Below are positions 2,373 to 35,424 of a DNA stretch of 64,000 nucleotides, piece by piece (positions within the stretch are counted from its first letter, which is position 1; each line of letters starts with the position of its first letter). Location of the stretch: sequence record PQ227241.1; one strand, written 5' to 3'. The notes beneath the pieces are model-generated. The model ran no database searches. It saw nothing but the letters and a program-made list of their open reading frames with translations, and was not told the origin of the DNA. Position numbers and translations under genes: made by a program.

Positions 2373-5428
<3,056 letters not shown>

Positions 5429-33311: not shown

Positions 33312-33322
33312 TGGAGTTTTAA

Positions 33323-34924
33323 ATGGCTACTGCTGACTTCGATAATGAGTACGATGATACTCCAGAAGAGAATTTACTAGATCAAATTGATGAGATCAAT
33401 GCGCAACACGATCCTGACTCTAGTATTGAAAATAATGACGAGGTGGAAACTCCACCTTTCGTTCCTGATCAAAAAGAAATTAAACTACGTATTCCACGTA
33501 ATGCTAAAACTGGAAATATCCGGGATGCTTCTGAACCGGCTATTAAAGATAGTGCTAGCATTCTTACTTTACTACGTGAGAATCCCCAGACTGTTTATAA
33601 TTTCCTGGATCACAATAAAGAACTATTTAAAGCATTTGCTGATAATAAAGTAGATGACACTAGTGACGGTGTAAAGTGGACAGCTGCTATTCTGGAAGGC
33701 TTAGCTCACTCTATTGTTGAAGATGCACCAATCGGTGCAACTGCCCGAGAAGGTTCTGAATGGTCTAGTGAAATTCCTTATGGTGAAAAGATCATTCGAC
33801 CTGGCCGACCTGTATTTAATACCAATGGTCGTAAAATGACCGATGATGAAACTCTAGTTTTCCTAACACGTAAAGCTAACATCGGTACGCCATATGATAC
33901 TTTCCTACCTCATTCAGGTATTTGGGTAAAACTACGTGCACCTACTGGTACTGAAGTAGCTGCCCTACAAGCACGTCTAGCACAATTAAAGATCCGGCTA
34001 GGCGCTGAATCAAAAGGTATGCTGTTCTCAAACATGGCAGCTGTGTTACTTAACATGGTTAGTAGTTTAGCACTTGCATGTGTTATTCAATCCAACTATA
34101 AGTTCAACACCCCAACTGATCTAGAGCATGTTATCTCAGTAGCTGATGAGCCGTTCTTGCATCACGCACTAGCGGCGACTATGTATCCAGATGGATTTAA
34201 TTATAGTTATCCATGCATTGCAGATGCCAATACATGTAACCATATTGAAACAGCGAAACTTAATATGTCAACGCTTGTTCAATATGATCTACTGGCATTC
34301 TCAGAAGAACAAAAGAAATATATTGCACGTAAGTTTAATGCATGTACTGAATCTGATCTTAAGACTTATAAAGAAGGATTCCGTATTGAAACTCAAGTAA
34401 CTGAAATGTTTGGTGACGTTGGTGTTGTTCTTGAGATGTGTACAATTGCTGATCGCCGAGAGTCTGGTGATAGTTGGATTAACTCAATTATCGATATGAC
34501 TCAAGGTAGTTTTAATGAACCAGTCGATGGTCCGCAACGTTCTCAGTATATTGCACGTTTACAAAAGATCTCTATTGCCCGTCAGTTCTCACATTTTGTT
34601 AAAGAAATTAAAGTACGTGAAGATGACGATGGTGAAAGTTCTGAAGACAATATTCGTACTGCAACCACTAATCGTGAAACTATTGAAAAGTTCTTAACTA
34701 ATATTCTATCCACACCGGAATATAATGACCGCTTTATTAATGCGGTGAGTAACTTCATTGATTCACAACTAATTGGAATGATTGCAATTACAAGTTGGAA
34801 TTGTCCAGTATGTGAGTCACCTGCTGCTACTAAATTTAAAGAACGTTTCCCACACTTAATCCCTATTGACATGCTGTCAACTTTTTTTACTTTGGCGGCC
34901 TCGAAGTCAAACCTGATGGTGTAG
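33323..34924 (+). CDS. Probable tail/baseplate assembly chaperone with Zn-ribbon (gp77 orthologue)
   Basis: 533 aa, GGAG SD; C-terminal WNCPVCES and IPIDMLSTFFTL; T7 slippery run at 34882-34888. The function is inferred. Confidence 0.6.
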   Translation: MATADFDNEYDDTPEENLLDQIDEINAQHDPDSSIENNDEVETPPFVPDQKEIKLRIPRNAKTGNIRDASEPAIKDSASILTLLRENPQTVYNFLDHNKELFKAFADNKVDDTSDGVKWTAAILEGLAHSIVEDAPIGATAREGSEWSSEIPYGEKIIRPGRPVFNTNGRKMTDDETLVFLTRKANIGTPYDTFLPHSGIWVKLRAPTGTEVAALQARLAQLKIRLGAESKGMLFSNMAAVLLNMVSSLALACVIQSNYKFNTPTDLEHVISVADEPFLHHALAATMYPDGFNYSYPCIADANTCNHIETAKLNMSTLVQYDLLAFSEEQKKYIARKFNACTESDLKTYKEGFRIETQVTEMFGDVGVVLEMCTIADRRESGDSWINSIIDMTQGSFNEPVDGPQRSQYIARLQKISIARQFSHFVKEIKVREDDDGESSEDNIRTATTNRETIEKFLTNILSTPEYNDRFINAVSNFIDSQLIGMIAITSWNCPVCESPAATKFKERFPHLIPIDMLSTFFTLAASKSNLMV

Positions 34925-35385
34925 TTAATGATCTGAGATATAGTCGTCTTGAGGCCACTTTCACGGAAGATAGTGGCCACATCCTACATCCAAACTTTGG
35001 TTATGATAAGTTAACTGAAGATGATACACACTTAGATAGACTATTATCGACAGTAGGGGCAGTAAGACCGTCTACAGCAGCACGTTTAACAAGAGAAGCA
35101 TATCTACTTGATTACGATATCGGTTCACCAGAAAACGGACCCATGTGGTTAAATAAAGTAAATCCTAAAGAGGATTTTATCGAAGGTGGGTTGAGAAGGA
35201 GACTGACTAGAGATTTCTTCAAGTATAAAGTAGGTAGCTTATCTAATATGTCATTAACTGAATTCTTTGAATTAGCTTATTCTGAGGTAGAATACATAAT
35301 TGAATTATGTAGGAATATTACTCATAATGAGGCTGTTAATAACAATAACCAGTTAAATGAATTAAACAAGCCGTTAACTAAATAA
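34888..35385 (+). CDS. -1 frame extension of gp77 (gp76 region; the track shows only the last 80 aa)
   Basis: Frame open from 34870 to the stop at 35383-35385. No ATG, GTG or TTG for 91 codons before 35143. It is the -1 frame at T_TTT_TTT. Confidence 0.65.
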   Translation, partial: YFGGLEVKPDGVVNDLRYSRLEATFTEDSGHILHPNFGYDKLTEDDTHLDRLLSTVGAVRPSTAARLTREAYLLDYDIGSPENGPMWLNKVNPKEDFIEGGLRRRLTRDFFKYKVGSLSNMSLTEFFELAYSEVEYIIELCRNITHNEAVNNNNQLNELNKPLTK

Positions 35386-35402
35386 AAAAAAATAAAGACA
35401 GG

Positions 35403-35424
35403 CCCCTCTCCACATGGAGAGGGG
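35403..35424. terminator. Bidirectional terminator between convergent units
   Basis: CCCCTCTCC-ACAT-GGAGAGGGG followed by TTTATG. Confidence 0.8.

Follow-up and report, generated by a model that had tools for sequence, protein, structure and literature searches.

The subject here is a gene of nucleus-forming jumbo phages that appears to be read in two frames. It lies in a 64,000-nucleotide stretch of sequence record PQ227241.1 (hereafter the window), which comes from a phiKZ-type Pseudomonas phage; over the region 33323-35420 it shares 100% identity with phage HUST_1, 99.0% with phiKZ and at least 95% with 47 records. The gene, PHIKZ077, encodes gp77 and is Chimalliviridae core gene cg18, for which the phiKZ product gp077 is given as a 'hypothetical protein' (PMC10299810 supplement). 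Near its 3' end the 0-frame codons ACT TTT TTT ACT hold a run of seven T (T7) in the phase T_TTT_TTT, after which the 0 frame continues for eleven sense codons to a TAG (34922-34924). The -1 frame, closed by a TGA at 34867-34869, is open from 34870 to the TAA at 35383-35385, and its first ATG, GTG or TTG past T7 is the one at 35143, 85 codons on. With the base composition of the window, a frame of 172 codons would be free of stops with a probability of about 1e-5, and one of 91 codons free of start codons with a probability of about 0.013. No database record examined annotates a join between the two open reading frames (ORFs); all of them annotate two coding sequences (CDSs), the second being PHIKZ076.4 in phiKZ. 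The features are collected in the table below.

Features of the PHIKZ077 locus in the window, and corresponding regions in PF12322 genes of other phages
Feature	Coordinates	Strand	Remarks
Shine-Dalgarno-like GGAG	33313..33316	+	read directly; 6 nt upstream of the gp77 ATG
0-frame ORF PHIKZ077 (gp77), 533 amino acids	33323..34924	+	phrog_4585, E 1.8e-195; Chimalliviridae core gene cg18; proposed short isoform
Candidate slippery run T_TTT_TTT (T7)	34882..34888	+	spans the near-invariant Phe codons F521 and F522
Putative dual-coding overlap	34889..34924	+	11 codons and the stop of the short form; -1 frame would be read by the long form
-1 frame extension, 165 codons and TAA	34888..35385	+	would be translated only after the shift
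Stretch annotated as intergenic	34925..35142	+	apparently coding in the -1 frame; no ATG/GTG/TTG; contains near-invariant F37, Y72 and P85
Annotated PHIKZ076.4, 80 amino acids	35143..35385	+	C-terminal half of the -1 extension
Terminator-like hairpin	35403..35424	.	scores on both strands; just past the -1 stop; would end the gp78-gp77 transcription unit and the convergent unit
PF12322 T-run and -1 ORF regions (OLIVR5, S-WAM1, LPCS28, 79 cyanophage-type loci)	L073:1866-2057, L074:1863-2063, L075:1866-2042; L076-L155		

A programmed -1 shift from PHIKZ077 into the ORF with its stop at 35385 had been proposed for this locus from the letters of the window. Read codon by codon, the T7 run, its phase ahead of the gp77 stop, the -1 frame open over 34870-35385 and the lack of a start up to 35143 are all as that original prediction described them, and its product sizes of 533 and about 687 amino acids are arithmetically right. 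The downstream partner, which it called gp76, is in fact PHIKZ076.4.

The arrangement is shared by the whole gp77 family. Our family set joined 11 annotated relatives with 49 IMG/VR loci recovered with the family alignment; in all, 61 gp77-family loci were counted, ranging from 22 to 100% identity to gp77 and covering at least 10 genera as well as metagenomic contigs, with hosts that include Pseudomonas, Xanthomonas, Erwinia, Ralstonia, Serratia and Bacillus. A phased N_TTT_TTN is found in 61 of 61 loci, in the canonical form T_TTT_TTN in 46. In 60 of the 61, a T5-T9 run lies 8-44 codons upstream of the 0-frame stop and the -1 frame extends for 151-181 codons; open +1 frames are short in most cases. 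The -1 frame opens at the run or upstream of it, never later. This comparison of the heptamer, the Phe-Phe codons and the -1 frame is one that the original prediction had called for, and together with the coding selection described below it upholds the proposed shift.

Start codons in the -1 frame show no such constancy. The first ATG, GTG or TTG lies anywhere from 8 to 151 codons past the run, with one locus in which 151 of 154 -1 codons pass without a start, and in 31 of 53 loci it falls downstream of a near-invariant Phe column. The annotated starts of the downstream ORF are non-homologous between relatives.

The sole exception among the 61 loci is that of Pseudomonas phage RVTF4 (L007), in which the -1 part carries one frameshifting indel relative to two close relatives; the break may be an error of the record or a real lesion. 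Relative to the same two phages, the RVTF4 -1 part also has one in-frame gap of 3 nt. The PCH45 clade (L011:2239-2380, L062) differs in another way, as its 0 frame continues for 44 codons past the T run, against 8-20 elsewhere, and the short isoform would therefore have a much longer private tail.

The protein encoded past the run is conserved from its first residue. With the -1 piece as query, tblastn finds PS119XW, PhiPA3, Phabio, Noxifer, Psa21 and D6; the alignments start at query residue 1, have 34-41% identity and overlap the ends of the gp77 homologues in those relatives. The profile phrog_12109, of 147 positions, covers residues 27-163 of the piece translated in the -1 frame from 34888, so that the alignment begins 59 residues upstream of the annotated Met, and every -1 piece tested (42 of 42) aligns and matches this profile. 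Four residues are near-invariant in the -1 pieces (F37, Y72, P85 and E95 in phiKZ), the first three of which precede the annotated phiKZ Met86.

An exhaustive HMMER search gave 1231 cluster representatives of the gp77 family; the best 150 were inspected for their C-termini, and all of these end no more than some 30 residues from the segment that aligns with gp77 524-532, with no in-frame fusion among them. Nor was a lineage with a clean gap or a fusion between the two parts seen among the loci and representatives examined. Word-indexed protein searches with the -1 piece or its alignment yielded no more than 1-3 fragments, since gene callers cut this ORF short. One entry that resembles the -1 piece (P0021, 96 amino acids, 89% identical) is filed by NCBI/UniRef as a partial Klebsiella pneumoniae protein from a contig of 288 nt, and is probably phage DNA within a bacterial assembly.

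The pattern of substitutions indicates that the -1 frame is read well before any start codon. We counted differences in eight independent, non-overlapping pairs of relatives at 70-93% nucleotide identity. Past the 0-frame stop and before any start, positions 1, 2 and 3 of the -1 codons show 21, 16 and 53 differences, and further downstream in the same frame they show 152, 84 and 377. The overlap zone has 21 differences in 113 codons, as against 90 in the 125 codons just 3' of it, a strong conservation that is expected for dual coding. Judged by these counts, the stretch without starts shows the substitution pattern of coding sequence, and purifying selection acts on both parts. At the site itself, the first Phe codon is TTT in 61 of 61 loci, although elsewhere in these ORFs TTT accounts for only 29% of Phe codons, a share that falls to 14% in the 22 GC-rich loci. 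TTT is thus fixed at the site against codon usage, and therefore the bases are kept, beyond the residues they encode.

Taken at the level of sequence comparison, the evidence for recoding is strong and recoding itself is well supported. Three marks of a -1 site are present: a slippery heptamer in the right phase, a coding -1 ORF that has no conserved start, and conservation of the signal beyond what the residues need. We consider it probable that PHIKZ077 and 'PHIKZ076.4' are one recoded gene, from which a -1 shift yields a short and a long isoform of a hub or tail assembly factor. At the gp77 T7, some ribosomes very probably slip back by one base. In the scheme that we propose, and whose ribosomal nature and efficiency we infer, most ribosomes would read 33323-34924 and release the 533-residue protein, and a fraction would slip back one base with tRNA-Phe on the TTT_TTT codons (34883-34888) and continue in the -1 frame to 35385. 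The predicted long isoform, of about 687 residues, would consist of the shared residues 1-522 and a different C-terminus of 165 residues. In the simplest reading, tRNA-Phe would slip on the U run, in tandem at canonical heptamers and as an A-site or single-tRNA event at those that begin with a base other than U.

Several observations weigh against this scheme. The first base of the heptamer is not T in 15 of 61 loci, including most Pseudomonas-phage genera except phiKZ and 201phi2-1, and with such a base only A-site or single-tRNA slippage re-pairs perfectly. The T8-T9 runs of some clades would also suit slippage by RNA polymerase. Finally, we found no conserved or significant RNA structure downstream of the run. 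The arms of the two stems that had been proposed as stimulatory and competing are indeed present where they were placed; the first stem, however, forms only in a fold of 72 nt and is replaced by the competing hairpin in a fold of 102 nt, and the z-scores of the folds (-0.5 and -1.0) are both within chance. Folds of 72 and 102 nt past the run gave no common structure in fifteen relatives, RNAalifold on 12 Pseudomonas-phage loci gave -0.9 kcal/mol with four pairs and no covariation, and Rfam gave no match. As nothing was conserved or beyond chance, these stems were dropped. Neither a downstream hairpin or pseudoknot nor an upstream Shine-Dalgarno-like element could be recognized at the site. Such a stimulatory element is usual yet not obligatory for bacterial -1 frameshift sites.

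A useful comparison is dnaX, in which a homopolymeric heptamer read by one tRNA species gives tau and gamma, two isoforms of one protein, much as proposed here for gp77. However, dnaX shifts into an early stop, so that its shifted product is the shorter one, and it uses an upstream Shine-Dalgarno-like element and a downstream hairpin. In contrast, the shifted product of gp77 would be the longer one, and at gp77 the two elements were not detected.

The main rival to ribosomal slippage is transcriptional slippage, in which the phage RNA polymerase would add one U (or drop two) and a share of the mRNA would join both parts in one frame. The signal is a pure homopolymer without a detectable stimulatory RNA structure, it reaches T8-T9 in many clades, and the annotations show that these phages are transcribed by unusual multisubunit polymerases of their own, all of which would fit such a mechanism. 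However, the run is just T5-T6 in 25 of 61 loci, mostly in Pseudomonas-phage genera (PS119XW, PhiPA3, Phabio, Noxifer), and T6 in all 79 of the cyanophage-type loci described below, and T5-T6 is short for productive slippage by a polymerase. In addition, the run is invariably phased to the codons as N_TTT_TTN, and this phasing is needed by ribosomal, not by polymerase, slippage. Because of the short runs and the invariable phasing, polymerase slippage is disfavoured, and we regard it as unlikely, though less clearly so for the T8-T9 clades.

Another possibility is to take the annotation at face value, as two separate genes of which the downstream one initiates by itself, at the ATG 35143 or at a non-canonical codon upstream of it, with the run kept merely for Phe-Phe. 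Besides the uniform annotation in the databases, this would be in line with the many relatives that have an ATG, GTG or TTG 18-35 codons past the run and with the cyanophage group, where a start codon follows 4-20 codons past the run. It is difficult, however, to reconcile with annotated starts that are non-homologous, with a nearest phiKZ start that forfeits 85 conserved codons and three of the four near-invariant residues, or with the locus that is start-less almost throughout (151 of 154 codons). There is no Shine-Dalgarno sequence upstream of 35143 either; read in the window, nothing there is comparable to the GGAG of gp77. The choice of TTT against codon usage, the opening of the -1 frame at or before the run but never later, and the lack of a clean gap or fusion in any lineage likewise speak for one gene, and we hold two independent genes to be quite improbable. 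The stretch 34925-35142 contains no terminator-like site between the two ORFs.

The kind of shift envisaged for gp77 has a well-known counterpart in the tail assembly chaperones (TACs) of long-tailed phages, lambda G/GT, P2 E/E+E' and Mu, whose frameshift was reportedly described by Xu, Hendrix & Duda 2004, and gp77 could be thought to belong to this family proper. The logic is the same, in that a -1 shift shortly before the 3' end of a morphogenesis-type gene leads to two proteins that start alike and differ at their C-termini, and in both cases the signal is conserved across very divergent phages; P2 slips on a T run, and a few Foldseek rows for gp77 carry the name tail assembly chaperone. 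However, these rows have E 2.3-5.0 and a probability of at most 0.12, and no TAC family matches in Pfam, PHROGs or NCBIfam. With 533 residues gp77 is about four times larger than such chaperones, which have roughly 100-150, it differs in family and fold, and its neighbours are helicase, RNA polymerase and head genes instead of the tail tube and tape measure genes between which TAC genes lie. Membership of gp77 in the TAC family is therefore very improbable, more so than either of the alternatives above.

A sequencing or assembly error in the homopolymer, or a decaying gene, can practically be dismissed, since, error-prone as homopolymers are and in spite of the indel in RVTF4, both parts are under purifying selection and the same arrangement recurs in 47 phiKZ-like records, which come from many laboratories, and in 60 of the 61 divergent loci, a distribution that refutes such an error. 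In the independent phiKZ-like records present in both tblastn tables, the offset from the gp77 start to the first -1 codon is 1565 nt in 12 of 12 cases, and the frame arrangement is therefore not a sequencing artefact such as the homopolymer error against which the original prediction had cautioned.

If PHIKZ077 and 'PHIKZ076.4' are indeed one recoded gene, the question arises of what its products do. The original prediction saw in them a tail chaperone pair of the G/GT type. By context, size and sequence they are not lambda, P2 or Mu TACs, and what remains of this idea is a resemblance to T4 gp26 and gp51, which are listed as hub assembly chaperones (PMC3004832). Both of these T4 proteins match PF12322 (T4_baseplate) over the whole of their shared length and are therefore paralogues, gp51 having about 48 extra residues at its C-terminus.

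Sequence searches of Pfam, NCBIfam and PDB with both parts of the gp77 gene found nothing, and the resemblance came from structure models and profile alignments. An AlphaFold (AF2) model of gp77 built with 100 homologues has a predicted local distance difference test score (pLDDT) of 87 and a predicted template modelling score (pTM) of 0.87; its N-terminal ~30 residues are disordered (pLDDT <50), its confidence is patchy to about residue 80, and a C-terminal helix (517-532) includes the Phe-Phe. In Foldseek searches of BFVD, the matches that follow the family members themselves are named 'Baseplate hub assembly protein, bacteriophage T4-like' and 'Baseplate hub subunit' (246-284 residues), with E 9e-5 to 2e-2 and TMt 0.47-0.57; the best three of these rows have E 9e-5, 1.3e-4 and 1.9e-3, each with a probability of 1.00, and TMt 0.52-0.57. 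Against the PDB, Foldseek gave no match below E 1. Because no PF12322-family member occurs in the PDB search, the comparison is one between predicted structures, and on these models gp77 shares its fold with the PF12322 hub-assembly proteins.

Profile alignments may point the same way. By hhalign, a 63-sequence PF12322-type alignment matches gp77 170-533 with 82% probability and E 1e-5, and does so colinearly over 151-235 columns (gp77 188-525). The probability is 14-38% with an 11-sequence PF12322 alignment; with few sequences only the Cys motif is found, and against a single T4 gp26 or gp51 only short motifs. Of the two families that the original prediction had named for a profile check, TACs gave no match in Pfam, PHROGs or NCBIfam, and for T4 gp26/gp51 the match varies with the size of the alignment. 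As for the -1 piece, its residues 105-155 in phiKZ align with the gp51-specific tail at 48% probability and E 1.8e-4, which is weak to moderate support; a larger alignment gives 8% and P 0.004 in the same register, with P 0.8 for a reversed control. The C-terminal stretch that had been flagged as resembling the T-portion of a TAC may thus correspond instead to the tail of gp51. Aligning the -1 family with the whole of gp51 by hhalign gave nothing, and a fold of the -1 piece, with just three homologues, had a pLDDT of 37.

Two observations on the gp77 protein may be added. Its residues 1-70 (33323-33530) are strongly acidic and largely predicted to be disordered, with a length that differs greatly from one relative to another, and relatives of the phrog_8054 type are longer by about 150 residues at the N-terminus. 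In Bacillus phage AgentSmith (L012:922-2625) the gp77 homologue is named 'putative baseplate hub assembly protein', the only functional name among the records examined, and this name agrees with the fold result for gp77.

On this basis gp77 would be a greatly enlarged relative of T4 gp26/gp51, with the short form comparable to gp26 and the long form to gp51. The two isoforms would act as a pair of non-virion assembly factors for the tail hub or tube, in a manner like that of G/GT, for which T4 uses two paralogous genes. No virion role is on record for relatives of gp77 in the 201phi2-1 record or the text of the Goslar virion-structure paper: the record of the 201phi2-1 homologue gp136 carries no mass-spectrometry note, and that of a neighbour does, and that text makes no mention of Goslar gp81 by name.

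Likeness to T4 extends to the natural sequences, in which two Cys pairs and a Phe-Phe that ends the shared domain are common to gp77 and gp26/gp51, and it may extend to short (gp26-like) and long (gp51-like) versions. However, T4 has two paralogous genes without a slippery run or a -1 extension; gp77, at 533 residues, has a disordered acidic N-terminus, large insertions and another genome neighbourhood; and its extension has 165 residues as compared with about 48.

Other facts tell against a hub-assembly role. The PF12322 Pfam model matches neither gp77 nor 11 diverse relatives even at E<=1, and the similarity between the -1 tail and the gp51 tail is weak, at a probability of 8-48%. The gp77 gene is sited among replication, transcription and head genes (PHIKZ075, helicase; 073/074, RNA polymerase; 078; 079-081, head and virion RNA polymerase; 082, DNA polymerase). 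The orthologue in Churi is listed as early-expressed (PMC11849849), which is unusual for a tail morphogenesis factor, and an antisense knock-down screen does not have phiKZ 077 among its top hits. Because of the gene neighbourhood, the early expression, the antisense screen and the lack of a Pfam match, we treat a gp26/gp51-like function of gp77 as a lead, with about an even chance of being right.

The same signal occurs in PF12322 genes of other phages. T4 gp26 and the PF12322 products of Agrobacterium phage OLIVR5, Synechococcus phage S-WAM1 and Cronobacter phage LPCS28 all have natural C-termini formed by Phe-Phe and one to three further residues. In OLIVR5, S-WAM1 and LPCS28 the terminal Phe-Phe codons are a phased T_TTT_TTC, and the -1 frame continues for 54-62 codons beyond the stop. 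All 79 analysable cyanophage-type IMG/VR loci likewise carry T_TTT_TTC at the terminal Phe-Phe, with a T6 that begins at codon position 3, followed one codon later by the stop, with a -1 frame of 63-69 codons and a +1 frame of 6-23. The -1 pieces of these PF12322 genes align colinearly with the last ~50 residues of gp51, which gp26 lacks, and in OLIVR5 this -1 ORF is a CDS of 46 residues named 'baseplate hub assembly catalyst'. In contrast, T4 (L069:10803-12229) and two relatives in which 26 and 51 are separate genes have neither a run at the Phe-Phe codons nor a -1 extension. The -1 ORFs of the PF12322 genes probably represent an undescribed frameshift in its own right. Cyanomyoviruses, OLIVR5 and LPCS28 resemble gp77 in the phased T run at Phe-Phe and the open -1 frame, and differ from it in that the 0-frame stop comes one or two codons on, the extension has 54-69 codons and tail-tube-type genes adjoin.

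These parallels raise the possibility that one ancient recoded hub-assembly chaperone gene is common to T4-like phages, cyanophages and nucleus-forming jumbo phages, and that T4 and its close relatives have swapped the shift for a duplication. We offer this only tentatively, with doubt slightly outweighing belief. If it is true, the two-isoform logic also operates in contractile-tail phages that were believed to lack a frameshift like that of G/GT, and both the small 'gp51' ORFs annotated in cyanophages and the jumbo-phage ORFs of the 'PHIKZ076.4' type are mis-annotated fragments. It would also explain in a simple way why the hub-assembly chaperones of T4 are two paralogues.

We found no description of a frameshift in connection with phiKZ, Chimalliviridae, gp26 or gp51 in the searchable, non-subscription literature, and the original prediction likewise knew of none for phiKZ-like phages. 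Neither the locus tags PHIKZ077 and 076.4 nor a frameshift in the PF12322 genes of cyanophages, OLIVR5 or LPCS28 is mentioned in that literature, and the words frameshift, slippage and recoding are absent from a 2026 jumbo-phage review. Recoding of PHIKZ077 would correct the annotation of core gene cg18 in every record of a nucleus-forming jumbo phage that we examined, since what is filed as a 533-residue protein, a gap of 218 nt and an 80-residue orphan would be one gene with two products. It would provide cg18 with a first functional lead, as a gp26/gp51-like assembly factor, and would mean that the use of two isoforms, as in tail assembly chaperones, extends to another protein family and to phage groups not previously seen to employ it. 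The claim can be tested on existing data from infected-cell proteomics and ribosome profiling.

Two minor features of the window remain. Just at the end of the -1 frame (35384-35424), between convergent transcription units, a run of nine A (A9) starts within the -1 stop codon, ahead of a GC-rich hairpin of 9 bp. Runs of seven or more T are depleted in the window, with 5 observed and 17 expected from composition, and the T7 runs other than that of gp77 lie at 3412, 4788, 47875 and 60281. On the + strand, runs of at least seven A are as scarce as those of T (5 each, with about 17 T runs expected), which suggests a general avoidance of long homopolymers in this genome.

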